Shown: positions 9,599 through 58,348 of the stretch, piece after piece | How the letters are laid out: every line of letters begins with the position of its first letter | How positions within the stretch are numbered: position 1 is the first letter of the stretch | The notes under the pieces: generated by a model | Database searches by the model: none | What the model was told of the DNA's origin: nothing | What the model saw: only the letters and a program-made list of their open reading frames with translations | NCBI GenBank assembly: GCA_965649825.1 | Contig: OZ287702.1 | Location: forward strand, 434,001-498,000 | Origin: Penicillus capitatus | Lineage: Eukaryota; Plantae; Chlorophyta | DNA length: 64,000 bases | Direction: 5' to 3' | Program-made: the position numbers and the translations under genes

Positions 9599-10144
9599 TC
9601 ATGAAGAAGAGACGAGAACGCCTTGACTCGATGAGGCGGCGGCGCCGTCATCCACATCCTTCTCTTTCGTTCCGCCCTCTGCTTCGCCCTCTCCCTGCAC
9701 GAACGCACACATGTCTGCCGATCCCACATCGCCACACAGCGACTTTGATGCGTATCTTGTACTTCTTCTGAAAGGCCGATAGTGCAGCGCATTCTTTGTT
9801 ATGCTGTTCGGCGAGTTTCTCTAACACCTGTCAGTCACATCATTGATGGCATGAAGTGACGGTGCTGTAAGTGGAGAGACAGTTTGAAGTCCTTGCTCCG
9901 TCTGCTTGACATCAGGGATGACCTCGCCGACCGTTCTTTCGACCAGGACATCGCCCACCAGTCGATAGCATCGCCGTGAGCTTTCCATGGGCTCCAGTGC
10001 TTTGAGCACGGCTTCGTATTCGGATAACTCAGAGCGCAGTTCGTTGATCTTAGTCCACAATACCTCGACACCTTCATGCATCGATACATAACGCTGGACG
10101 ATTTCGGTATGATTCTTAAACTCTTCTCCCTCGCCAGTCGCCAT
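9599..10144 (-). CDS. PFD2: Prefoldin subunit 2
   Basis: EYEAVLKALEPMESSRRCYRLVGDVLVERTVGEV; two introns; C-terminus ...SSSQGVLVSSS-TGA. Confidence 0.9.
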
Positions 10145-10196
10145 TCTAAACAAAGCAGGACGTCTGATGTGACAGGCCTTTACTGCCGCAGTGCCC
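10145..10196. promoter_or_regulatory. 52-nt bidirectional intergenic spacer between the PFD2 and ALG12 start codons
   Basis: Divergent ATGs at 10144 (-) and 10197 (+); contains TGATGTGAC at 10165-10173. Confidence 0.6.
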
Positions 10197-12024
10197 ATGG
10201 CGTTGTCTTCCGGAAGGACACGTTCTCTATGGACGCTCCTTTTGTGCATCATCTGGCTGCTGATTCTCTTGGCGCCCTATACCAAAGTGGAGGAGAGCTT
10301 CAACACGCAGGCCGTGCGAGATGTGCTGAAGCTTGGATGGAAATTCAATGGCTATGATCACAAAGAGTTCCCCGGCGTCGTCCCGCGCACCTTTCTCGGT
10401 ATTCTGACCCCATATCCAACACCCAAGGGTTGTGCGATATATACAGGCGCGATGGTTGTGGCAATGCTCTCGATGCCCCTGTTCATGATGTGCACCAAAT
10501 TGTTGGGAATGACAGACTTGATTGGACTCTACATTTCTCGTGGGATCTTGGCACGAAGTTTCCTGCACTGGATGTGGCTGGCTGCTGATCTGAGGTATAT
10601 AGGGTTGGCTCTCTGTTGAGAGCTTTGACTATATGAAGCGTGCCATTACCGCGAAATATGGACGGGCAGTGGGACAGGTCTTCCTCTTGATATCGGCGCT
10701 GCAGTTTCACTTGCCGTTCTACGCATCACGTATGCTGCCCAATACGTTTGCCATGATCTTGACCAATGTGGCCATGGCTGCCTGGATCCAGAATCCGCGT
10801 CAGAAATACAGCCTCTATCTTCTCCTGTTCACTATGGTTCTGCCAATCGTCTGTCGACACTCGAACGAAGCGACTGTTTCATTTCAGATCTGTTTTCGAT
10901 GTGATGTCCTGCTGCTGCTATTACCCTTTATCGCGCTTCTCCTACTCGAACGTCACATCACACTATTGGAATTGGTGTGGCATCTTTGTTTGGGTGCCTT
11001 GTTCAGTCTATCGATCACCATTTCGGTCGATTCGCTCTTCTGGGGACGCTGGGTCTGGCCAGAAGGAGAGGTCTTCTACTTCAATGCTATTCTACAAAAG
11101 TAGGGATGCCTTCTTCGTCATCATCGATCGTGTTGTCTCCCATAGGAGTGTGGAATGGGGCGAGATGCCATTTCATTGGTACTTCACGTCTGCCCTTCCC
11201 CGTTCCCTCCTCGTTGCCTATCCTCTCTCATGGATGGCACCCTTTGTCGAAAAGCGCATCCGGTCTGTCGCCCTCATTGCTCTCATCTACGTTGTGCTCT
11301 ACTCGAAGCTCAATCATAAAGAAGTGCCCCACCACTTCGTGGCTTGTGTGTGTTTCATACAGTGCATTCAGGTCCGATTTCTGTTTCCCGTTTTGCCGCT
11401 ATTCAATCTTTCGGCGTCGGCTGCTTTCGTCCGATGCTGGAGAAACAGAAGCAAGAGCATTGTCTGGAAAGGCATCCTTTTCGCCGGGATCTTTGGAAGC
11501 GTCATTTCTTATGCAGCAGCTATCCTGATGCTTCTGGCTTCGATGTATAACTACCCTGGAGGCCAGGCATTGCAGATCCTCCACACAAGACAGCATTACT
11601 CTCCTCGGATACAAACACCGATCTGCTACCCATCTGGAAAGGAGATCTCTGTGCACATTGGCACATTGCCTGCTATGACTGGCATCACGCGTTTTGCAGA
11701 ACTCCACCCGTGCTGGACTTACTCCAAAGTCTCTTCCCACAGATCCGTACCTCTTCTTTATTTTTTTCCTCTCAGGACGAAGAGCTCACCATCGACGATC
11801 TCAGTCACTCGCGTTTTGATTTCCTCATCACAGAACACACCAACATCTCGGGGTCTCTCCTCTCTTTATCACTGCGTCATCATGTTCGTTCGTTCAGATA
11901 TCGTCAAGTAGAGCAAGTGGATGGATTTGCGGGCATTAAAAGAGAGGGACTATGGATTTTGGGGTTCAAGCTGCAAGCGATGGTATATATTCTGCAGAAA
12001 GCTGATGATGTCGACGTCGGATGA
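10197..12024 (+). CDS. ALG12: Dol-P-Man:Man7GlcNAc2-PP-Dol alpha-1,6-mannosyltransferase
   Basis: [58 protein letters not shown]|[18 protein letters not shown]. About 7 introns including GC-AG 10551-10602. TGA at 12022-12024. Confidence 0.92.
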
Positions 12025-13178
12025 GTTACAACAACGTCACTTTCTCCCGTTCCCCTTTTCCGACGCATCGCCTCGCTCGTTACTTTCGTTCTGTGCGTCT
12101 CCGTGCGATGGATCTCGAGTTTGTACGTGCGGGGCCCTTGATCAAGAACGGCGGTTTTACCGACGCTGAGCTCGAGGCCGAGGCACCCAATTGGACACGG
12201 GTGTCGGAATGGATCGTCGAATCTCTCGGCTTTGATAAGGAGTCGTTGACAGGGGAGGCTCAGAAACGCGTGTTCCACTACTACTTGCCCATTGCGATGT
12301 GGATTCAGCGTATGAAGGAGCAACATATGAAGCAGTCGCCTCTCGTTTTGGGCATCTCCGCTCCTCAGGGATGCGGAAAATCGACCATGGTGGCCTGTCT
12401 CTTCGATGTCTTCGGAAAAATGGGCATGAGAGTTGCCTGTGTCTCCATCGACGATTTCTATCTGACCCATGCCGATCAGAAGAGAGTGGCGGCCGAGAAC
12501 GAAGACAATCCTTTGCTGCAGTGTCGAGGCAATGCACTGACCCACGATCTAGCCTTGGGCACAGAGACCCTCCAAAACCTCAAAGGTATGAATGATCACG
12601 ACATTCAAACATCCAGCCAGACATAGACAGGCAGTCCACGCTGATGTCATGGGTTATGTGCAGATCTGGCGGAGGGGAGTACGGTGAAGATTCCGAGATA
12701 TGACAAATCTGCGTTCGAGGGCAAAGGCGATCGAATGGAGTCTGAGCAATGGATGTCCGTGGAAGGCCCATTGGATCTGATCCTTTTCGAGGGCTGGATG
12801 CTTGGATTTCGTCCAACGTCGACCGAACACATTCAGTCGGTCGATCAACACCTTCTGCCGATCAACGCAGCATTGAAAGAATACGAGTCTGCCTGGGATG
12901 CCTTTGTCGATGCATGGTTGGTGATCAAAGTGGCCGATCCTTCCTGGGTTGGCAAATGGAGACTGCAGGCAGAACACGGAATGAAGAGGAGGGGCAAACC
13001 GGGAATGAGTGATGAAGCTATTCAAGCCTTTGTCAATTGCTACATGCCAGCATACAACGCATATTTGCCAGAGCTTTATGCTAAGGGACCCACAACTGTC
13101 CTTCCCAATAAGTGCCTTATCGTCGAAGTGGATGCGACCCGAATTCCTGTCGCTGAACAACCGGAGCCGGTCTCATAA
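12021..13178 (+). CDS. GLYK: D-glycerate 3-kinase, plastid-targeted
   Basis: Transit-peptide-like [29 protein letters not shown]; GISAPQGCGKST, SIDDFYLT, IPRYDKSAFEGKGDR, LFEGWMLGF, YMPAY. One intron at ~12588-12664. Confidence 0.93.
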
Positions 13179-13203
13179 AACATAACTCTTTTTGCAGACC
13201 GTA

Positions 13204-13208
13204 TGTAA
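13204..13208 (+). terminator. TGTAA chlorophyte-type polyadenylation signal downstream of GLYK
   Basis: TGTAA 26 nt after the GLYK stop. Similar TGTAA motifs follow other genes (2453, ~4317, ~32733, ~58327). Confidence 0.6.
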
Positions 13209-13582
13209 CACACGCTTTTATTAAAAGGATTAAATGAATCAGCTTCGTGCCAAACAATGCTAGAATTTGAGTACGGGGCCGTCAACATCCAACCTTTATT
13301 CTCAATATCCAAGGGAGGAAGGAAGGAATCTAGAAAAGAGAATTCATATACGGTACACATGCTCTTGGACTCCATCTTCAAACTTCAGAGTCATCGTCAT
13401 CACTAACAGATACAAAGATTGGCAATGCGATATACAAAACTGATAAATTGCGAACACTAAATAGCATCCTTCGCCCGCTTTGCACAAGAAAAGTGTCAGC
13501 TGTTGAAACAACCGACAATTGTTTATCCGCTCAATATATGCCCCCTGCTTCATTAGCCGGCCCAGTTGGGAGCCTGTGCTTG

Positions 13583-16063
13583 TTACGGTAGAATGATGTG
13601 ATCGACTGGGCGGTTTTCTGTTTCCGTAGCGGCGAAGAGTTTTATGTCTCCTTGCATTCGACTCTTCAAAAACTGTTTCAACTCTGCCTTGGATTCGCTT
13701 CTACGGGATCTCTTGATCAAGTCATCCACTTGGCGAACGAAAACTGCGTTGTTCTTCTTGGACGCCGAAGCGTTTCGTTCAAGAGTCAGGGAACAACTCT
13801 TCGTCCTAGAGACACACAACAGGTATCCATCAGCAAGGATGGTACAGATTGATGTCGACGACTGGCCTTCTGGCAGTCACATGTCCTTTCTCTTTATTTG
13901 TTGCTCTCTGTCTGAGATCGCTTGTCGAGATGGCCATCGTCGTCTGCTCCTTCTCTCCAAAGGGCTGATAATCGATATGGGCATATCTCTTGCCCGGAAT
14001 CAGACTATCACACGTGCACTTCGAAAGAGCTTCCACAGGAACAGACGGATAACGGCAAAGAGGCGTGCCTCTGTGGGCCGGAATGCATCTCTCCTGTAGT
14101 TGCAGGCACGCTGCAAAGACAGTGTGAAGGGAACTGTGATGAAAGAAGAGGAGTTTTCGAACCATTAAGTTTTTGGACGATACTCAAGAAAGAAGGTCGT
14201 TCTCTCGGACACTGTGACCAGCATTCCGTGATCAGTATCGCCAGTGATGGCGAAACACAAGTCGGAATTGCCGGTCTTCTTCCGTCGGCGATCAATCGAG
14301 GGATGTCGCTGCGTCTGTGTCCACTGAACGGTGTTCGATGCACACACATGTGGTAAAGGAGACAGCCGAAGTCGTAAACATCGCTGGCGTAACACAAGAG
14401 TCCATCCCTGATGGTTTCCGGCGCTGTTCTGGTCACATGTTGACTTCTATTGAAGTGAACCGAAGCACTCCCACGAGACAAACGCAAACACGAGCCAAAT
14501 CCCCCGACCTGAGAACAGCAAGACAAACGGACTGCCTCATGTTTAGCTGTCTACAGACTCTCCTCACCTTGCACTTAAATCCACGAGGATCTGTTGCATC
14601 GGACTGCAGAAAGATATGTTCTGCACAAAGAGCACTGTGGATGATGCGCTTGGAGTGAACATGAGCCATTGCTTGTGCGATCTCCAGTGCGCAGGTTGTG
14701 ATGTGTTCGTGCCTTTCCGGCACCGAAAGAAGACGATACTTGAGTGCATGATGTAAAGAGCCACGGTCGCAGTATTCCATAACGATAAGCGTCTCATAAG
14801 ACATGTCGGTTTGCCCAGTTGGTGCTTGACTTGAATTCAAACGGATTTTGACGGGTGGTGTATTGCTGAGACTCATCATCACTTTGACAACATGAGGATG
14901 GTGCAGATGTTTCATATATTTCACTTCGGCCGGTTCACGACTGGCCTGACGGTAAGATCCAGCTCTATAAGATACTTTAACAGCAACAGGTCTATGATGA
15001 AGCGTGCCTTTGTACACAATACAATTCGGTTTGCCTTTGCTCAACGGGGTATCCAGGTCCAGCAGGAGCTCGCATTTGTTTTCTGAGCTTCTCTCTGCGG
15101 TATTCTTTATTTCTTTGTCCGATGTTTCTGAACCGACCGATGCATCCTCATGATCATCGCTTATAGAAGTGACTTGCTTCTTTGATTGTAAAAATATTCC
15201 ATACATAATGCGGCATAGTGTTATTGAAAGTAGTATAAAAAGAAGAATTCCCGACAAAAAAGAATGTTGACAATCGGGGAGGAACGCGTAGAGAAACGTA
15301 TATTGGGTTGTTAATGAGGAAGAATCATCGAAAGGCGAAAAAGCATCTGACAGGACGGCAGCATCTTTAAAACTAGACTCTCTGTCCCACAACGGATGAC
15401 CGTCCTGCAGGTAAACGTCGCTGCCCTGAACAACAACCCGATGCACCGCAGTGTCGTGTACTTCAGCGACAAAAAAATACGCATAGTAAATCATCGTATG
15501 TCTTCCCACCACGACATCGGCGGTTTCGAATGACTGACCTGTCGTTGACAACGAGACAATTTCGGAAAACACACTCCATGCTGAGGACGTCATCCGCGTC
15601 GAATTCATGTGACTGGATCGACGGAGAATATCTAAGCGTTTCGTTCGAGCTGTCTGGAAGGAGGCATGCGCGATCGTATCGTCCCTGACACTCCCCGAGA
15701 TGTCCAGGTGGATTATCACGGATGCCACGCAAAGGTATCGAACATAAAGGTTTGAGAAATTCACCATCATCCACAGATAGCCGTATTGAGCGTCCTCTCC
15801 ACAACCACCTCTTCGAGTGCTCTCACGTCTATTCTTGCAAACGCAGGCGGCCGGCAAAGACAAACTTTGCTTCAAAACCGCGCTTGTCTAGTTTTGAACG
15901 ATTGAGCGAGCTCACGTAGAGGAGATAACAACCAACTCCGAATCGAGACACGAATGACAAAAACCCGGTACCCGACACCTCTCGCTGGCAAGTTTCCTCC
16001 AAACACCGCACAGATGCTGATCATTAACACCAACCGTCGTTGTGGGAAGAACGAATAGTACAT
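13583..16063 (-). CDS. Single-pass receptor-like TKL-type kinase with degenerate catalytic motifs (pseudokinase)
   Basis: Putative signal (MYYSFFPQRRLVLMISICAVFG), TM LSGILLFILLSITLCRIMYGIF, then PVAVK, HPHVVK, IVMEYCDRGSL, IIHSALCAEHIFL, DPRGFKCK|VGGFG, APETIR, SDVYDFG, ITECWSQCPRERPSF. Confidence 0.75.
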
Positions 16064-30585: not shown

Positions 30586-32704
30586 ATGATGTCTGCATTA
30601 CGTCTGAAGGCATTGCGTCTGCAACGACCCGCTGCCTTTCCGAAGAGGTCTCCGACGGTCGCCCTGCACTGCCGAAGACAGCAACGCTTCCAACGGCGAC
30701 CTCATGAATCCAGAGCCCGTCCTTCGCTTTTACCTTGTTCTGCAAGTCTCGACCTTTCATCCCTCGCCGCTCTCATCGAAGACGTGCTGAGCGACGACTC
30801 CCCGTGGCTCAACGAAGGTCGTTGTCACGACGACTCATGACGTCGCTGTACTCTCGCCTTGCTTAGATCTCGAAACGCTGACACATGAAGATCTCTCATC
30901 GAATCCTGAATTCGAGAGATTTAAGGAACTGTCTGAAGATGGAAATCTCATTCCCCTTTTTCGACGCGTTTTCTCGGATCATCTCACGCCGATCTTGGCC
31001 TATAGGTAATGACCCCCAATGGCTGGCGGTTGTCCCAAGAGGCTCTTTGCCTTGCAGATGCCTTGTGAAACAGGATGACCGTGAGTCTCCGAGTTTTTTG
31101 TTTGAGTCTGTTGTAAATGGCAGTTCAAACGGACGCTTTTCTTTCGTCGGTGCCCGTCCCGCATTGGAAGTGACCGCCATGGGCAACCAAGTGGTCGTGT
31201 TGGATCACGAACACGGAACCCGGACGGTTACAAAGGAAGAGGACCCCATTGAAGTATACCGACCGATCTCTCATAACTGATCTCACACAAATCACACAAT
31301 ACTTTAGGTTCCGATCCGGATCAGTCGACAATGGCGACCTGTCCCAGTCGACAGCCTCCCTGACGTTTTCTCTGGAGGTTGGGTTGGATACGCAGGATAC
31401 GATACGGTTCGGTATGTCTACCCTGAGAAACTCTCGTTCGATGGGGCGCCGGAAGACGACAGAGAATTGCCAGATATGCATTTGGCGTTGTACAATGATG
31501 TCATGATCTTTGATAACGTGGGCAAAGTGGGATACATGGTGTGCTGGACACATACCAATGATTTCCAGTCCATCGAAGAGGCCTACCTTCACGGAGTAGG
31601 TCGACTGAAGGGTCTCTGCAAGCTCATCGCCAAGGTCAATGCTCCACGACTGATCCACGGATACATCGATCTCAAGCTGGCGAGCCATCCCACGCACAGA
31701 GCGGTGTCCAACATGACCAAAGAGGGATTCGTAAATGTACAAAGCGTCGAATTTGGATAACGTGCATGTGACGGCGACGGTCGTTGTCTAGGCGATTGAT
31801 GAGATCAAAGAGCATATTCAAGAGGGTGACATCTTTCAGTTGGTGTACAGTCAGAGATTTGAACGACGGACTTTTGCGGATCCGTTCGAAGTGTACAGAG
31901 CATTGCGTGTGGTGAATCCCTCGCCCTATATGATCTATCTGCAAACGCGAGGTTCCATCCTCGTCGCTTCAAGTCCCGAAATTCTCTGCCGGTCTCTTCC
32001 AAACATGCTCCTGTCTTGTCATGCCGAGCAGCGTTTTGTGTAGAGTGGATAACAATCGCGTCGTCACAAACAGGCCGTTGGCTGGGACGCGTCCCCGAGG
32101 CTCCACGGCCGATCAGGACCGACAGTATCAAGAAGATCTCTTATCGGACGAAAAGGAGAAATCTGAACATATCATGTTGGTGGATCTCGGTCGAAACGAC
32201 GTTGGCAAAGTGTGTGAGGCGGGAACGGTCCAGGTTGAGAAGCTCATGTCCATCGAGCGTTACAGCCATGTGATGCACATCAGCTCCACCGTCACAGGAA
32301 AACTGAAATCCGAACTGGACTGCTGGGATGCGTTGCGTGCTGCTCTGCCGGCCGGTACGATCAGCGGCGCCCCAAAAGTCCGTGCGATGCAGATCATCGA
32401 CGAACTGGAGACGAACAAACGTGGCCCCTATGGAGGAGGCATCGGCCACATTTCTTTCACAGGCGCCGTTGATATGGCCCTTGCCCTGCGCACAATGATC
32501 GTACCCTCTGCCCCTTCCGACGTCCTGTACAAGTACAAAGGCGCACAGACTCGGCGCGAATGGGTCTTCCACATTCAATCGGGAGCAGGGATCGTTGCAG
32601 ATTCGGATCCGGAGAAAGAATACGAAGAGACATTGAACAAGGCGGCAGGTCTCGGCCGTGCCATTGATTTGGCAGAAAGGGCATTTTTGAATTCGGATGA
32701 TTGA
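30586..32704 (+). CDS. ASA1: Anthranilate synthase alpha subunit, plastid-targeted
   Basis: Transit peptide MMSALRLKALRLQRPAAF; GNLIPLFRRVFSDHLTPILAYR|CLVK, GDIFQLVYSQRF, NPSPYM, RPLAGTRPRG, EHIMLVDLGRND, LPAGTISGAPK, GAGIVADS; five GT-AG introns. Confidence 0.95.
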
Positions 32705-32803
32705 AAGAGACATCGTCGGTGTTGTTAGTGATGTAACAGTATGCCCAAACGGCCTCATCAAGATTTTGAACGAATGCAGGGTTTAACGGTAAGACCAGTC
32801 AGT

Positions 32804-34594
32804 CTACGATGATGAACGTCCCGGCGACGAATCTCTTTTTCTTGTCATATGTCGCTTCTCTTCTACAGGCGAGATCTTTTGGATCATCGATGAGACATCT
32901 ATTGGTGAAGACATGCGTTCAGCAATATTGTTGTGCTGTCTATTTTCTGCATCGGATGACGATGGTGATGACGGTTGGATTAACGTTTCGGCATCGGCAT
33001 CGACCATGCTCATTGTCTGGAGCTCCTCTTCTGGCAGAAGCGCCGATGGGTGATCCACTTGACCCACGGCATCTCTAGAGTACTCCACAATCAGCTTCTT
33101 CTCGGCCACTTCCCCTCCATTGCGCTGCACGCAGTCCACGAGGTCCAGAAAGAACTGGTGCCTTAACGACATGAAGGCATCTCTATTGGTTGCCTCTAGA
33201 TAAAATGAAATGTAGATGCTTATATATTCTCGATTGATCTCATCGAGAAAAGCTCTCTTATGCAGTTTCTGCAGCACTCTCGCATCTTGTCGAATGATGC
33301 GACGCATATCAGAAACAATGGCCTCCACTTTATCCAGATCTTTCAGACGCACATGAATGAACTCAAAAAAACGCCATTCACGTCCCTTGCGTGTGACATT
33401 GAGCACGACGGTGCGCGAAAAGAGTGAGTTGGGAATGACGTAGACTTCTCTTTCGAAATCGCGCACCACGGTGCGATACCAACCGACATCTTGGACGATG
33501 CCCTCGACTCTCTTCTCTTCCAAGGAGAAGAGCACGACCTCGTCGCCGACATCGAATGCGCGCGATCCCATAATGAGCAATCCGCTGAAGAGATTCTCAA
33601 AAATCTCACGGCCGGCCAAACCGATGGCCAGACCTCCCACTCCTCCAATAGCCAGCACGGAGTTGACATCGAGTCCCAGCGACTGGAGTCCCATAATGGA
33701 GGCCACGATGAAGATCCCCACCGTCAGTAGTTTGTCAATCGCATCAATGCGATGCTGCTCTGTCGTCTTACCTTCCAATTCCATTCTCCATTTGGCTTCT
33801 CTGAAAATACGTCCCTTCATGTTATGCACCACTCGAGCTGTCGCCATCACGAAGGTGAGCGACACGATCGATCGCACCACCACGGCGATGACGCTGCGAG
33901 GCATGGACAGCAACGGAGGCAGAAGACTCTCTGACAGTGCTGCCAATGCAGCCACCACCAGCAGCAGCTCCAATGGACTGTACATCTCCCGTAACAGGTA
34001 GCACTCGATAGAGCTCTCCCACGATGTTCGTATCCCAAGAAATTCACGGATCGCACGGATCAACGGAGTCAGTCCCGAACGGACAAAGATCATGGAGCCG
34101 ATAATGGCCAGCACTTGACGGGCGAGATCGGACCGTATGAACTTGCGCAAGACTTTGATGACAGAGAATTTGAATCCCATGTTCGTCACGAGAAAGACGG
34201 TCATGACGGAGAAGACGATTCCCATGAACAGCGTCGTGGATACCAGGGCGACGAATTGGCGCGTGCTCTCGAGAGAGGTAGAAGGACGAGATGGCACGGC
34301 ATTGGCATCTGGACCAACAGGGTCGCCGCCCGTCCTGCTGCTTTCGACTTCAACGTCGTTTTCTTCACCCGCTGCAGCGAAGCGCCGCCACACAGGGCGT
34401 TGCGTCTCGCCTGAGTATCGTCTTTCGTTTCGCTTGAGTCCCGGTTTCGTCAGCGAGGTCACGGCGCTTCGGCAGAAGGGACGGCGGCGATGGGGAGAAG
34501 GGGAGAGGAATAGAATCGAACGTCGCAGAGGCTGCTGGTGCGAATAGATATCTCCCTGACGTGTACACGTGACTCGCAGCACAATGCTGTTCAT
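32804..34594 (-). CDS. Plastid MscS-like mechanosensitive channel (MSL2/3 type), apparently intronless
   Basis: Transit-like N-terminus from MNSIVLR; VLAIGGVGGLAIGLAGREIFENLFSG, FDVGDEV, EGIVQDVGWYRTVVR, IPNSLF. Confidence 0.9.
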   Translation of the reverse strand: MNSIVLRVTCTRQGDIYSHQQPLRRSILFLSPSPHRRRPFCRSAVTSLTKPGLKRNERRYSGETQRPVWRRFAAAGEENDVEVESSRTGGDPVGPDANAVPSRPSTSLESTRQFVALVSTTLFMGIVFSVMTVFLVTNMGFKFSVIKVLRKFIRSDLARQVLAIIGSMIFVRSGLTPLIRAIREFLGIRTSWESSIECYLLREMYSPLELLLVVAALAALSESLLPPLLSMPRSVIAVVVRSIVSLTFVMATARVVHNMKGRIFREAKWRMELEGKTTEQHRIDAIDKLLTVGIFIVASIMGLQSLGLDVNSVLAIGGVGGLAIGLAGREIFENLFSGLLIMGSRAFDVGDEVVLFSLEEKRVEGIVQDVGWYRTVVRDFEREVYVIPNSLFSRTVVLNVTRKGREWRFFEFIHVRLKDLDKVEAIVSDMRRIIRQDARVLQKLHKRAFLDEINREYISIYISFYLEATNRDAFMSLRHQFFLDLVDCVQRNGGEVAEKKLIVEYSRDAVGQVDHPSALLPEEELQTMSMVDADAETLIQPSSPSSSDAENRQHNNIAERMSSPIDVSSMIQKISPVEEKRHMTRKRDSSPGRSSS

Positions 34595-39567: not shown

Positions 39568-42500
39568 ATGAAGACCACCACTGTGATGTTAACGCTGTTT
39601 GCATGCTGTCTGCTGCTGGTACGTTGCTTGCTGAAACGACTGCCTAGCATCGAACATCGTCTTGTCGCTTAGCTCGGCGAAGCAAGTGGTAGAAGTACGT
39701 TACAAAAAGACAAGGCTCGTGAATCCAAGCAAAGTAAAAAATTTCTCCGTAAGCGGGAAAAGATCGTGATGCGTATGTTTGTTCGCAGAGACCAAGAAAG
39801 GATGCAAGAGCGGATTCTACCAGGACTATAACAAAGACTGTGTTAAATGCGACCCTTACTGCGCTCCAAAGGCGTGCGTCGACCTTTCAGGCTGCGCCGA
39901 GTGCGTCGAGGGTTACTTTTTGTCGCTGCCTTCGACTAAGCGCGAACCCGCCATCTGCAAGCTCTGCAAGGATAGCATTCGAGGATGCGCTCAATGCGTC
40001 AGCGCCGCCAAGAACGGCGAAGAGGAATGCAAACTTTGCGAGCTCGGCTATGTCCTCATCGATGGCTACTGTGTCGACACGGACATTCTATCTCCGGTGC
40101 TTGGCTCTATTGGAGCATTAGAAGTGGAGGAAGGATTTGAACGCGAATTCGACCTTGAATTCACCGTGGACTACGACACTGAAGAAGGGTATGACTATAT
40201 CGTCGAGAAACGTAAAGGTAAGCCGAACTGTGTGGTACGAACATAATGAAAGACGGTTACGGATTTAGGGGGCAAGAAGACAACGAAGAAAACGACGAAG
40301 ACGGTTATCACTTCCGAAGAAGAGGAAGGATTCGGAGAGATTGAAGGTGAAGGGTTTAGTAAAAAGACGACAAAGGTTACTAAGAAAACGGAGAAAGGCG
40401 GAGGGAAGTTCGACATAGAATTCGAAGAAGGGTTCGAAGAGGAGGGCTTTGAAGAAGGCTTTGAAGAAGAAGGCGAAGAAGGCTTCATTTCCGGCGAGGG
40501 CGTCGTCACGACCTTTGAAGAAGGCGAAGAAGGCATCATCTCGGGCGAAGGCGGAGAAGGCATCATTTCCGGCGAAGGCGGAGTCACGACCACTGAAGAA
40601 GGCGTCGTCACGACCACTGCCGAAGGCGAAGAAGGCTTCATCTCGGGCGAAGGCGGAGAAGGCATCATTTCCGGTGAAGGCGGAGTCACGACCACTGAAG
40701 AAGGCGTCGTCACGACCACTGCCGAAGGCGAAGAAGGCTTCATCTCGGGCGAAGGCGGAGAAGGCATCATTTCCGGTGAAGGCGGAGTCACGACCACTGC
40801 CGAAGGCGAAGAAGGCGTTATTTCCGGTGAATCCGGAGAAGGCGTTATTTCCGGTGAAGGCGGAGTCACGACCACTGCCGAAGGCGAAGAAGGCGTTATT
40901 TCCGGTGAATCCGGAGAAGGCGTTATTTCCGGTGAAGGCGGAGTCACGACCACTGCCGAAGGCGAAGAAGGCGTTATTTCCGGTGAATCCGGAGAAGGCG
41001 TTATTTCCGGTGAAGGCGGAGTCACGACCACTGAAGAAGGCATCGTCACGACCACTGCCGAAGGCGAAGAAGGCGTTATTTCCGGCGAAGCCGGAGTCAC
41101 GACCACTGAAGAAGGCGTCGTCACGACTACTGCCGAAGCCGGAGAGGGCGTCGTCACGACAGCAGTGGGTGACGAGACAGTGAAAAGAGATGCTGTAGTC
41201 ACGGTAAGCAAGGGAGATGCAGTCGTTACCGCCATCGAAGGAAAATCTGCCGAAGAAGGCGAGGTCACCGTAAGCGAAGGAGCCGTTGTCACAGTAAGCG
41301 AAGGAGGTGAAGTTACCGTAAGCGAAGGAGGTGAAGTTACCGAAGTTATCAGCGAAGGTGGAGCCATTGTCTCTGTTAGCACTGGAGGTGCGGCCACCGT
41401 AAGCGAAGGAGCCGCAGGAGAAGCCGTTACGGTGAAAGAAGGAGCAGCTGTCACAGTGACCGAGGGCGGTGGTTTCACCGTGAGTGGCGGAGTCACCGAA
41501 GTCGTTAGCGGAGAAGCTGTGACAGAGTCCGTTGTCACCGACGCCGTCGTCACCGTCAGCGAAGGAGAGGCAATCGTCACAGCAGCTCAAGAGGGAGCCG
41601 CTCAGGAAGAGGCAGTCACTGTATCTAAGGGTGGCGCCGTGACCGTGGGCAAAGGCGGTGCCGTGACCGTGACAGAAGGAGACCAGGTCACCGAGGTGAT
41701 TCGCAAGGGCGGAGCAGTCGTCACCGTCTCCAAGGGAGGTGCTGTCACCGTCGCCGAGGAAGGAGTGACCGACCAAGAGGTCGTCAAGGTCACCGAAGGT
41801 GGCGAAGTCACCGTCGGCGAGGACAGAGCTGTCACCGTCACTGGAGGCGTCACCGAAGTTGCGCCGACTCCTGGTGCTGTTGGCGGCGTGTCCGTCAGCA
41901 AGCAACCTGCCGCAGTGTCCGTCGGCGCCGCAGAGTCCGTGGTCGCCGTCAGCGAAGGAAAGGCAGTTGTCACTCCAGTCCAAGGAGAAGCCGCTCAGGA
42001 AGAAGCCGTCACCGTCGCCAAGGGCGGTGCCGTCATCGTCGGCGATGGCGGTGCTGTTACCGTGACAGAAGGAGACCAGGTCACCGAAGTGATTCGCAAG
42101 GGCGGGGCAGTCGTCACCGTCGAAGACGGAGGCGTTGCAACAGTGACCGAAGGAGCCGCAGGAGAAGCCGTTACGGTGAAAGAAGGAGCAGCTGTCACAG
42201 TGACCGAGGGCGGTGGTTTCACCGTGAGTGGCGGAGTCACCGAAGTCGTTAGCGGAGAAGCCGTGACAGAGTCCGTTGTCACCGACGCCGTCGTCACCGT
42301 CAGCGAAGGAGAGGCAATCGTCACAGCAGCTCAAGAGGGAGCCGCTCAGGAAGAGGCAGTCACTGTATCTAAGGGCGGCGCTGTCATCGTCGGCGACGGT
42401 GGTGCCGTGACCGTGACAGAAGGAGACCAGGTCACCGAGGTGATTCGCAAGGGCGGAGCAGTCGTCACCGTCTCCAAGGGCGGAGCTGTCACCGTCGCCG

Positions 42501-45458
42501 AGGAAGGAGTGACCGACCAAGAGGTCGTCAAGGTCACCGAAGGTGGCGAAGTCACCGTCGGCGAGGACAGAGCTGTCACCGTCACTGGAGGCGTCACCGA
42601 AGTTGCGCCGACTCCTGGTGCTGTTGGCGGCGTGTCCGTCAGCAAGCAACCTGCCGCAGTGTCCGTCGGCGCCGCAGAGTCCGTGGTCGCCGTCAGCGAA
42701 GGAAAGGCAGTTGTCACTCCAGTCCAAGGAGAAGCCGCTCAGGAAGAAGCCGTCACCGTCGCCAAGGGCGGTGCCGTCATCGTCGGCGATGGCGGTGCTG
42801 TTACCGTGACAGAAGGAGACCAGGTCACCGAAGTGATTCGCAAGGGCGGGGCAGTCGTCACCGTCGAAGACGGAGGCGTTGCAACAGTGACCGAAGGAGC
42901 CGCAGGAGAAGCCGTTACGGTGAAAGAAGGAGCAGCTGTCACAGTGACCGAGGGCGGTGGTTTCACCGTGAGTGGCGGAGTCACCGAAGTCGTTAGCGGA
43001 GAAGCCGTGACAGAGTCCGTTGTCACCGACGCCGTCGTCACCGTCAGCGAAGGAGAGGCAATCGTCACAGCAGCTCAAGAGGGAGCCGCTCAGGAAGAGG
43101 CAGTCACTGTATCTAAGGGCGGCGCTGTCATCGTCGGCGACGGTGGTGCCGTGACCGTGACAGAAGGAGACCAGGTCACCGAGGTGATTCGCAAGGGCGG
43201 AGCAGTCGTCACCGTCTCCAAGGGCGGAGCTGTCACCGTCGCCGAGGAAGGAGTGACCGACCAAGAGGTCGTCAAGGTCACCGAAGGTGGCGAAGTCACC
43301 GTCGGCGAGGACAGAGCTGTCACCGTCACTGGAGGCGTCACTGAAGTTGCTGCAGCTCCTGGTGCTGTTGGCGGCGTGTCCGTCAGCAAGCAACCTGCCG
43401 CAGTGTCCGTCGGCGCCGCAGAGTCCATGATCACCGTCAGCGAAGGGAAGGCAGTTGTCACTCCAGTCCAAGGAGAAGCCGCTCAGGAAGAAGCCGTCAC
43501 CGTCGCCAAGGGCGGTGCCGTCATCGTCGGCGATGGCGGTGCTGTTACCGTGACAGAAGGAGACCAGGTCACCGAAGTGATTCGCAAGGGCGGGGCAGTC
43601 GTCACCGTCGAAGACGGAGGCGTTGCAACAGTGACCGAAGGAGCCGCAGGAGAAGCCGTTACGGTGAAAGAAGGAGCAGCTGTCACAGTGACCGAGGGCG
43701 GTGGGTTCACCGTGAGTGGTGGTGTTGCCGATCTTGTCGGTGCTAAAGCTTTCAGCAAGGAAGGTGTCACTGACGCCGTCGTCACCGTCAGCGAAGGAGA
43801 GGCAGTCGTCGCTGCGATCCAAAAAGAAGATGCACAGGAAGAGGCAGTCACTGTATCTAAGGGTGGCGCTGTCATCGTGGGCAAAGGCGGTGCCGTGTCC
43901 GTCAGAGAAGGAGACCAGGTCACCGAAGTGATTCGCAAGGGCGGAGCAGTCGTCACCATCAAAGATGGAGGCATTGCAATAGTGACCGAAGAAGGAGTGA
44001 CTGATCAAGAAGCTATCACTGTTACAGGCGGAGCTGTCACCATCACTGACGCTGGAGCCGTTTCTGTCACTGACGGTATCACAACAGTAGTAACCGAAGC
44101 CATCTTCACGACAGGAGCGGTCGAAGGAGTAAAGGCCGCCAAAGGAAAAGACTTTGTCGTGATAGGAGGAAAAACCGTCTCTCTCACCGAAGGTGATGAA
44201 GCCGCGGGAGGAAAGACAACCATTACAGTGACTACTGAAACCGTTTCAAAAGAAGAAGCCTTTGGAATCATCGGTCTCGAAAAGGCTGCTGGAGGCGATG
44301 GTCGACCCGGAAAGATCACCACAGTAGTAGATGGAAAGAATGTTACAGGTAACAAAAAACGTATTATACACTGATCAGGGAACTGACAAACGATTCTTGC
44401 AGGAATCGCCGAACAAACGGCCACTGTGATTGACCTTTCTAAGACTCCAACTGATGAAGCAGGTGTGCTGTTCGTGCTTTAAGTGTTGAACTTAATATTG
44501 TTAAGCAATAGGAGGAGATGTGACTGTGGTAGAAGCTGGCAAAGGAGATGAGTTAATCATCACTGAGGGAGAGGTGCGTGCACCCGCTGCTGGAGAGCCT
44601 AGTGGAGAGGTAGATGGAATATCCGTCAAAAAAGCACCACAGGCATCTGCAGCTCCGGCACCGGGCTCTCCAGCACCCGCCGGAGAAGGAGATAAGGCAC
44701 CATCCTCGCCAGAACCAGAGGCATCTGCAGCTCCGGCACCGGGCTCTCCAGCACCCGCCGGAGAAGGAGATAAGGCACCATCCTCGCCAGAACCACAGAC
44801 ATCTGCAGCTCCAGCACCGGGCTCTCCAGCACCCGCCGGAGAGGTAGATGGAATATCCGTCAAAAAAGCACCAGAGGCATCTGCAGCTCCAGCACCGGGC
44901 TCTCCAGCACCCGCCGGAGAAGGTGAAGCAGCCGCCGGCAAAGGAGCCGATGTTAAGATCGTTGGCGGAGATGTTACCACCACAACCAAATCAGAAGAAG
45001 CTGTTAAAGGTGTCACTGTTACCTCCGCAGAAAAACCTGTTGATGCGTCCCCAGCGCCGTCTACTGCTAAAGGCGCTGCTGCTGCCGGAGTCGAATCCGT
45101 AACCGAAGAAATCGTCGTCGAACGCGCAGGCGAGCTTGACGAAATGACTGAAGGCGAACTTCTGCTTTTCGGCGGAAGTATCGGCGCACCTGACTTCCAA
45201 CCCGTATGTCCACCAGGCTATTTCGAAAAATTCATGGATGGCTCATGCATGAAATGCGATCCCCATTGTCTCAAAGTACCCGACAAAGATCACTGCGAAG
45301 ATGGTATTGGCTGTTCTAAGTGTGATGCTGGATTTTTCCGTGCACGCGAAGATGTATTTTGGCCGTTTGAATGCCACAATTGCGAGGATATGTTCCCTGG
45401 TTGCAAGAAATGTGTTGATGGCGTGTATCTCAATCGCGCAAAGTGTCTGGAGTACTAA
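39568..45458 (+). CDS. Giant (~1900 aa) secreted repeat protein with furin-like Cys-rich domains at both ends
   Basis: Signal MKTTTVMLTLFACCLLL. Introns ~39619-39672, ~39734-39788, 40218-40268, ~44350-44402 and ~44463-44504 join all ORFs in one frame. CxxC-rich domains at 39800-40080 and 45200-45450. Confidence 0.8.
40480..41160 (+). repeat. Coding minisatellite: 102-nt and 78-nt units (EGGVTTT-EG-EEG-ISG)
   Basis: gaaggcggagtcacgaccact recurs at 40574, 40676, 40778, 40856, 40934 and 41012. Confidence 0.9.
41405..43960 (+). repeat. 744-bp (248-aa) near-identical tandem repeat, three full units plus a partial fourth
   Basis: gaaggagccgcaggagaagccgttacg at 41405, 42149, 42893 and 43637; an internal sub-duplication (393/351-nt offsets) lies within each unit. 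Confidence 0.95.
44643..44920 (+). repeat. 78-nt Pro/Ala-rich coding repeat x4 (ASAAPAPGSPAPAGE)
   Basis: (g/a)catctgcagctcc at 44643, 44721, 44799 and 44877. Confidence 0.9.
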
Positions 45459-58293: not shown

Positions 58294-58348
58294 ATCAGAC
58301 CTTTTCACATCGACGGACCCCTACCATGTAACGCAAAGATTTCCTGCC

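Follow-up and report, generated by a model that had tools for sequence, protein, structure and literature searches.

An overlapping ALG12 stop and GLYK start in green-algal nuclear DNA: a conserved junction and candidate routes to GLYK expression

The overlapping genes and their junction

The 64,000-nucleotide (nt) stretch of Penicillus capitatus DNA analysed here (assembly GCA_965649825.1, contig OZ287702.1, forward-strand positions 434,001–498,000; referred to hereafter as the window, in whose own numbering positions are given) is compact green-alga nuclear DNA (~50% GC, introns of 45–80 nt, ~2 kb per gene) and contains two plus-strand genes, ALG12 and GLYK, that share an ATGA at which the first ends and the second begins (Table 1). 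The GLYK ATG lies at 12021–12023 and the ALG12 TGA at 12022–12024, with three bases in common, such that the distance between the two open reading frames (ORFs) is very short at −4 nt. The ORF that carries the last ALG12 exon (11710..12024, ...QKADDVDVG*) closes with this TGA, and a further ORF (12021..12626) opens at the ATG. The two successive TGA codons at 12003–12008 rule out an upstream in-frame GLYK start within the exon. We also rejected a frameshift or read-through fusion of the two proteins (the GLYK frame is closed by TGATGA 13 nt before its start, and no slippery site was seen).

The ALG12 coding sequence (CDS) comprises 1491 nt in eight exons, join(10197..10398, 10447..10550, 10603..10836, 10888..11099, 11146..11323, 11372..11728, 11776..11852, 11898..12024), and begins in the context cccATGg (a pyrimidine at −3, G at +4). 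Its spliced protein matches the Pfam family Glyco_transf_22 (PF03901, E = 2e-53) and is 42–49% identical to six full-length homologues (from Bryopsis, Micractinium, two Coccomyxa, Selaginella and Klebsormidium), some of which are named Dol-P-Man:Man(7)GlcNAc(2)-PP-Dol alpha-1,6-mannosyltransferase and with which it is colinear through the C-terminus. The tail ...MVYILQK pairs with the homologue C-termini QVFIFKR and QVYVLRR; alignment of these last residues identifies the TGA at 12022 as a genuine stop. Intron 2 (10551–10602) has the donor GCACGA, a GC-AG splice being needed here for both the frame and the homologue match; the remaining introns modelled at the locus are all GT-AG.

GLYK is encoded by join(12021..12585, 12664..13178), with a single 78-nt intron (12586–12663) and a TAA stop at 13176–13178. 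The protein has 1443 homologues, named D-glycerate 3-kinase, matches Pfam PRK (E = 7.5e-07), and is 50–65% identical, over 88–97% of the query, to green-algal and plant proteins named D-glycerate 3-kinase, chloroplastic. Its P-loop (APQGCGKST) and C-terminal ...EQPEPVS align with these homologues, the C-termini coinciding exactly. Among named organisms, Bryopsis supplies the best hits, as would befit a core chlorophyte. An earlier sequence-only reading of this DNA had proposed both gene identities, and both are borne out (ALG12 by its Pfam match and full-length colinearity with orthologues, GLYK by full-length similarity that includes the P-loop and the C-terminus); the ATGA overlap and the in-frame stops upstream of GLYK, which that reading had likewise described, were verified at their coordinates.

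Table 1. Positions of the two genes, their junction and associated features in the window
Feature	Position	Strand	Basis
ALG12 (Dol-P-Man:Man7GlcNAc2-PP-Dol alpha-1,6-mannosyltransferase), 496 amino acids	10197..12024	+	splice model, Pfam, homologues
Last ALG12 exon	11898..12024	+	splice model, homologue alignment
TGA TGA, GLYK frame	12003..12008	+	ORF reading
ATGATG, two out-of-frame ATGs at −16 and −13 from the GLYK ATG	12005..12010	+	kept in L001 and L007
CGACGTCG palindrome (GACGTC core), directly 5′ of the GLYK ATG	12012..12019	.	possible promoter element, weakly supported
ALG12 stop/GLYK start overlap, ATGA	12021..12024	+	ORF reading; identical in L001 (10001–10004) and L007
GLYK (D-glycerate 3-kinase), 359 amino acids	12021..13178	+	homologues, Pfam
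GLYK N-terminal extension, 29 amino acids, presumed chloroplast transit peptide	12021..12107	+	composition; homology to the L002 extension
M30, second in-frame ATG, gcgATGg (strong context)	12108..12110	+	homologue alignment
ATGTAAC, likely GLYK poly(A) signal	13203..13209	+	26 nt after the stop; TGTAAC kept in L001
Divergent prefoldin subunit gene, first coding exon	9821..10147	−	Pfam Prefoldin_2, E = 1.9e-14

Two contigs of related origin share the junction: L001 (ENA ERZ26696514, a 4.08 Mb contig), which has ~88% nucleotide identity to the window over 20 kb, and L007, a second contig from the same sample that is probably its other haplotype and whose junction is identical to that of the window. 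The gene order prefoldin(−), ALG12(+), GLYK(+), kinase(−) is common to all three. Between the window and L001, the changed codons comprise 88 synonymous and 80 non-synonymous among 495 in ALG12, and 54 synonymous and 40 non-synonymous among 360 in GLYK, indicating purifying selection on both genes. Conservation across the locus is lowest at 11900–11999 (75% identity to L001), within the last ALG12 exon, which also contains an in-frame 3-nt indel relative to L001.

Could the overlap be an artefact of assembly, of a wrong gene model, of a pseudogene or of a non-standard genetic code? The contig names point to metagenome-derived assemblies, yet the junction is common to three independent contigs; one ALG12 intron requires a GC-AG splice, yet the ALG12 and GLYK proteins align end to end with their homologues, and both genes are under purifying selection. 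TAA and TAG are reassigned in some ulvophycean orders, but the TGA that ends ALG12 means stop in either code, and the GLYK TAA sits exactly at the homologous C-terminus with no in-frame TAA or TAG in 855 spliced codons, from which we take the standard code to apply. An artefactual origin, already largely refuted, is therefore extremely improbable and essentially excluded. Judged from sequence, the overlap is real and conserved in a related species.

Within the window, ALG12–GLYK is the only same-strand pair at which an overlap of coding sequences was seen; other same-strand neighbours, judged roughly, appear to be separated by hundreds of nucleotides, so that −4 nt seems to be an outlier. Further ATGA overlaps, for which the sequence-only reading had proposed a genome-wide search, do occur within the window (five by a mechanical count that includes ALG12/GLYK, both ORFs being at least 80 codons long), but a wider pattern does not follow, the translations of the other four being not protein-like when judged by eye, without a Pfam run.

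The 29-residue GLYK extension, a presumed transit peptide, is rich in Arg and Ser (6 Arg, 4 Ser and 2 Thr, with no Asp or Glu), and acidic residues are absent from it in all three taxa compared. The most distant of these comparisons is provided by L002, a 1122-nt Joint Genome Institute contig whose GLYK is 65% identical and whose reading frame continues without a stop 5′ of the conserved MD. Its extension, MIYSLSRLSRVPMLSRRFGVVNSLFV-MD, aligns with M-S-Y...SRVP...SRRF of L001, the elements M-x-Y, SRVP and SRRF being kept; because they are kept through synonymous codon switches (AGA versus CGT for Arg, CCC versus CCT for Pro), we conclude that the extension is translated. The homologous first Met of L002 again stands in an ATGA context (catcATGAttt). 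The ATG at 12021, previously held to be a credible GLYK start, is thus strengthened as such by an extension conserved as protein in L002. Compared with L001, the extension in the window has synonymous changes in 3 codons, non-synonymous changes in 5 and no indels (counted by hand from the alignment), a roughly neutral ratio of non-synonymous to synonymous change (dN/dS) that is as expected of a transit peptide but is not decisive.

The extension is followed by a second in-frame ATG, M30. Residues M30-D31 are invariant in four relatives, the green-algal model P0002 starts exactly at M30, and several other green-algal models start near it. The contexts of the two ATGs also differ, that of M1 being weak (cggATGa) and that of M30 strong (gcgATGg; strong denotes a purine, R, at −3 and G at +4). 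M30 is consequently a candidate start for a version of GLYK without the transit peptide, and its strong and invariant character suggests two isoforms, with and without that peptide (plastid and cytosolic), since a short leader and post-termination scanning would each feed M30. Such isoforms, hinted at by M30, would bear on the flexibility of photorespiration.

An extension of this argument makes the overlap incidental, with most GLYK translated from M30 on transcripts that start just downstream of or around the first ATG, and with the longer isoform minor or conditional. The features of M30 given above would be consistent with this, as would the roughly neutral dN/dS of codons 11–25 between the window and L001 (manual count), and in Arabidopsis a cytosolic GLYK reportedly arises from an alternative promoter, which offers an analogy. 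ACGT-core motifs at 12012–12019 and 12035–12040 would perhaps drive such transcription, yet GACGTC shows no enrichment across the window (28 occurrences against 24 expected). The extension is, moreover, conserved as protein at a large distance, in an open frame and without acidic residues in three taxa, which requires the first ATG to be translated from some mRNA, and GLYK is as a rule a plastid enzyme. We consider predominant use of M30 quite improbable; it is compatible with separate transcription of the two genes and not exclusive of it.

Routes to GLYK expression

Leaky scanning through ALG12 had been described as a poor fit, and the ATG content of that gene permits a firmer statement. The ALG12 CDS contains 37 ATGs (18 of them in frame) against 22.1 ± 4.5 in shuffled sequences (observed/expected 1.67), and six of the 37 are in a strong R(−3)/G(+4) context. 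In documented algal bicistrons, which depend on leaky scanning, the first ORF has a median length of 291–600 nt and the observed/expected ratio of ATGs upstream of the second ORF is 0.43–0.49 (PMC7896298, PMC11291117); inter-ORF medians are 40–183 nt, some pairs overlapping (PMC11291117). The contrast between these short, ATG-depleted first ORFs and the long, ATG-rich ALG12 ORF excludes leaky scanning as a route to GLYK. The logic of the sequence-only reading, that either reinitiation or an intragenic promoter would then be needed, is upheld.

Reinitiation would operate on a bicistronic ALG12–GLYK mRNA extending from the ALG12 promoter to the ATGTAAC, some ribosomes (or their 40S subunits) resuming after the UGA at the overlapping AUG or at M30, 87 nt downstream; viral stop-start coupling would thereby have a cellular counterpart. 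The 4-nt ATGA is the optimal geometry for this, and is kept in L001, L007 and apparently L002; the −4 nt spacing also appears to be an outlier among the same-strand neighbours in the window. The two upstream AUGs at −16 and −13 would be harmless on such an mRNA because the ribosomes would arrive by translating ALG12. Nuclear polycistrons are established in green algae, with overlapping stop/start loci in Auxenochlorella (PMC7896298, PMC11291117), and in Chlamydomonas a marker placed 3–10 nt past a full-length, AUG-containing ORF is expressed, which its authors ascribe to post-termination reinitiation (PMC5144980).

Elements that might promote reinitiation were not detected at the junction. The exact TGGGA of motif 1 of the termination upstream ribosome-binding site (TURBS; UGGGA, complementary to 18S ribosomal RNA and expected ~20–90 nt upstream, the alga's own 18S sequence not having been used) occurs neither in window 11850–12021 nor in L001 9831–10001. 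Folding z-scores at the junction (+0.97, −0.19 and −0.61, two species compared) are not significant, and Rfam returned no match at the gathering threshold or at E <= 1. A 47-nt block identical between the window and L001 (12004–12050) was considered as a sign of extra conservation and rejected, since it is among 33 runs of this kind over 20 kb; at the codon level, the 7 + 10 unchanged codons flanking the junction are ordinary, runs of at least 10 being common in both genes. The proposal of reinitiation finds no backing in the sequence, which lacks UGGGA/TURBS, significant structure and extra conservation upstream.

The history of the gene pair bears on the same question. In L004, a 74%-identical relative, the convergent downstream neighbour of GLYK is retained. 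Farther away, Coccomyxa C-169, along with two further green algae that have the Coccomyxa GLYK neighbourhood, has other genes beside GLYK, ALG12–GLYK adjacency being absent, and in Bryopsis the two genes lie ~50 locus tags apart on the same 6.2 Mb contig. Colinearity of the pair is confined to L001 and L007, and possibly L002, and is not kept across diverged green algae; the two genes, unrelated in function, have become neighbours only recently. The synteny check that had been proposed for relatives thus gives a divided answer, pair and junction being kept in L001/L007 and unlinked in Coccomyxa C-169, the two others and Bryopsis. A scan of metagenomes for the junction in more distant relatives yielded nothing beyond L004, which is a 3′ fragment, and a locus of 44% identity, and L006, the sole relative of the ALG12 C-terminus, stops short of the last exon.

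L002 consists of GLYK with 24 nt upstream and 27 nt downstream, without the window's intron, and so has the outline of a monocistronic mRNA whose untranslated regions (UTRs) are very short, as it would if the contig derives from complementary DNA (cDNA). GLYK mRNAs in other green algae are monocistronic. In two Logan contigs of ~2.7 kb, GLYK occupies the 5′ end and ALG12 is missing, and searches of the protein collection returned no near-identical full-length spliced GLYK or ALG12 of this species, only ORF-level gene calls from genome contigs.

Set against the bicistronic arrangement, then, are a 1491-nt first ORF with 37 ATGs (1.67) unlike those of documented algal bicistrons, the absence of a TURBS-like UGGGA, of significant structure and of extra upstream conservation, the unlinked state of the pair in other green algae, and an L002 contig that breaks off 24 nt before the AUG instead of continuing into ALG12. 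GLYK output would also be bound both to a gene for a low-abundance enzyme of the endoplasmic reticulum and to reinitiation, which past a 496-codon ORF is inefficient in the eukaryotes studied so far. We judge a bicistronic mRNA somewhat unlikely. That the locus is a natural cellular termination–reinitiation bicistron, GLYK being made by ribosomes that finish the 496-codon, AUG-rich ALG12 ORF without a TURBS-like helper, we would call rather unlikely.

The compactness of the locus offers another route. The prefoldin ATG (10147) and the ALG12 ATG are only 49 nt apart, which leaves promoters no room except inside coding sequence or directly against it, and the stops of a convergent chorismate-binding-enzyme gene (+) and an MscS-like channel gene (−) are 100 nt apart (32702–32806), such that the 3′ ends must abut or overlap. 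Regulatory sequences here therefore routinely overlap transcribed or coding DNA.

We tentatively favour, with a confidence just short of even, the view that ALG12 and GLYK are overlapping but separate transcription units and that GLYK is translated from an mRNA with a very short leader. Genome compaction would have pushed two functionally unrelated genes together until they came to have ATGA in common. GLYK would have its own mRNA, whose transcription start site (TSS), with its promoter, would have to sit in the last ALG12 exon, the TSS within the last few dozen bases of the CDS and probably no more than 12 nt from the ATG; the short leader would let part of the ribosomes slip past M1 to the strong M30. 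ALG12 transcripts would end inside GLYK or continue to the GLYK ATGTAAC, and RNAs long enough to be bicistronic may arise by read-through without serving as the chief template for GLYK. Both the internal GLYK TSS and the 3′ end of the ALG12 mRNA are inferred. We prefer separate units because of the compaction of the locus, the lack of a reinitiation element, the young and functionally arbitrary pairing, the expected inefficiency of reinitiation and the shape of L002.

Several points weigh against separate transcription. The 100 nt before the GLYK ATG contain five ATGs (11921, 11952, 11980, 12005 and 12008), and the last two, which open a 54-codon out-of-frame ORF ending at 12169, mean that a separate GLYK mRNA would need a leader of at most 12 nt or a tolerance of upstream AUGs, since ribosomes scanning a leader of usual length would be diverted. 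In the window, no TGTAA or TGTAT occurs from the ALG12 stop to 13204, and none is conserved in L001; without a conserved ALG12 signal, read-through to the GLYK terminator is plausible, a point that also favours a bicistron. Green algae do use nuclear polycistronic mRNAs, some with an overlapping stop and start (PMC7896298, PMC11291117). L002, with 24 nt before GLYK, is too short to show an ALG12 neighbour, and its cDNA origin is putative. Finally, a promoter motif for GLYK is not demonstrable.

The nearest candidate for such a motif is the palindrome directly before the GLYK ATG, whose GACGTC core is found again at 10159–10164, inside the 49-nt prefoldin/ALG12 spacer. As a promoter motif GACGTC was rejected, since it is not enriched window-wide by the count given above; its association with ORF starts across the window is weak (8 observed against 4.1 expected, P ~0.05). 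A scan for sigma-70 promoters and terminators was uninformative at a eukaryotic locus. As separate observations, the arrangement GACGTC-NG-ATG before GLYK (12013–12023) matches one in the prefoldin/ALG12 spacer, and that spacer also holds a minimal ATG-TGA upstream ORF (10166–10171).

What the poly(A) motifs can contribute is limited. Plus-strand TGTAA is absent from 9866 to 13204, where the first site occurs, and the earlier statement that none lies between the ALG12 stop and 13204 is correct; its weight as evidence is little, however. The motif occurs about once per 1.8 kb on the plus strand, giving P ~0.5 for its absence over 1.2 kb (not significant), and four apparent gene ends (those of a kinase-like exon, MscS-like, RPL2-like and SnoaL) also lack TGTAA within 125–200 nt past the stop. 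We accordingly rejected the missing motif as proof of read-through. ATGTAAC also stands after the stops of the chorismate-binding and acyl-CoA oxidase (ACOX) genes (32731–32737 and 58326–58332), at 28 and 34 nt respectively and within a range of 28–36 nt; its position 26–36 nt past the stops of three verified genes indicates that 3′ UTRs can be ~45 nt long. The motif agrees with the chlorophyte UGUAA signal, present in 50–70% of mRNAs (PMC1868727).

Surroundings of the gene pair

A minus-strand TGTAAC lies on the junction itself (12025–12030, where GTTACA forms GLYK codons 2–3); L002 does not conserve it, and chance probably accounts for its presence. For the convergent kinase-like gene, no TGTAA lies closer. 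Elsewhere in the window, TTGTATGGA is found ~45 nt past the stops of an organellar-type RPL2 gene (~39170) and of a SnoaL-like gene (~46700, minus strand), and may be a second variant of the poly(A) signal.

The spacer between GLYK and the convergent gene (13190–13460) is 96–99% identical to L001, more than the 88% average and more than the coding exons on either side. It contains indels of 8, 9 and 2 nt, which show that it is not coding, and Rfam gave no match for it; a conserved element of a 3′ UTR, or a non-coding RNA absent from the annotation, would be possible identities. On the minus strand 3′ of GLYK, a peptide (...VD[DE]LIKRS..SESK.ELKQFLK..., window 13583–13819) is also present in the 74%-identical relative (L004 1075–1170), and this conservation marks it as a real exon, either the C-terminus of the kinase or a small separate gene; its C-terminal tail is of unequal length in the window and L004.

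At 40250–44374, both strands are open for more than 1300 codons, with GC of 0.56–0.62 and strong GC and AT skew. The region contains tandem repeats with periods of 24, 27, 78, 102 and 351, and its sole Pfam match is weak (Nup_retrotrp_bd); it looks like the gene for a large, repetitive, low-complexity protein.

Comparison with known systems

The ATGA layout is identical, to the four nucleotides, with that of bacterial translational coupling. There, however, the 70S ribosome or its 30S subunit is retained, often with a Shine-Dalgarno sequence, whereas the present locus is spliced, eukaryotic and subject to cap-dependent scanning. A closer eukaryotic likeness is found in viral termination–reinitiation (calicivirus VP1/VP2 and influenza B M1/BM2), in which a stop/start overlap (AUGA/UAAUG) likewise follows a long upstream ORF. 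The viral systems rely on TURBS; the algal junction is part of a cellular nuclear pair, has no UGGGA within 170 nt, no significant structure and, in the 100 nt upstream, the lowest conservation of the locus.

Highly compacted eukaryotic genomes, such as those of nucleomorphs and microsporidia, contain overlapping transcription units and multigene transcripts. These genomes have lost intergenic space and carry promoters and terminators inside neighbouring genes, each protein being made from the first usable ORF of an mRNA, much as we propose for GLYK. They differ in that this alga keeps many introns and ~2 kb per gene and, within the window, showed same-strand coding overlap at one pair only.

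The synthetic bicistronic vectors of Chlamydomonas (Onishi and Pringle 2016, PMC5144980) resemble the ALG12–GLYK pair in placing the second start within a few nucleotides of a full-length, AUG-containing first ORF. In these vectors the second ORF is expressed without an internal ribosome entry site, and the sequence before the junction is not critical (PMC5144980); the mechanism is contested between reinitiation and residual leaky scanning (PMC11291117). They are artificial, have a 3–10 nt spacer in place of an overlap, and succeed with a low output of the second ORF, drug resistance being the readout.

The nearest natural counterparts are the green-algal bicistrons (Gallaher et al. 2021, PMC7896298; PMC11291117), with which the pair shares same-strand ORFs, independent starts and stops, a minimal inter-ORF distance and a chlorophyte nuclear genome; in the present case the second ORF has an intron and is then followed by a UGUAA-type signal. 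It departs from them in that ALG12 is a long and ATG-rich first ORF and in that the pairing is not kept across green algae. An overlap of a first-ORF stop with a second-ORF start has already been reported in Auxenochlorella bicistrons (PMC11291117), and the suggestion that the locus is a candidate for an undescribed mechanism goes too far.

What the pair offers is a discriminating case. All green-algal polycistrons tested so far are explained by leaky scanning past short, AUG-poor ORFs; ALG12–GLYK cannot work in this way, and it therefore separates extreme compaction from genuine reinitiation after a long ORF. Under compaction, the tail of one gene would house the promoter and the ultra-short leader of the next. 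Reinitiation has been proposed for the synthetic Chlamydomonas vectors and never shown for a natural gene; were it true here, green algae would possess useful reinitiation past long ORFs and a second route to nuclear polycistrony, independent of leaky scanning. Either answer would help in predicting genes from compact algal sequence, in which pairs like this one are readily fused or cut short by mistake, and in designing bicistronic cassettes. While it fails the hallmarks of leaky scanning and of TURBS, the layout itself falls in a known class, that of green-algal ORF pairs lying close together on one strand.

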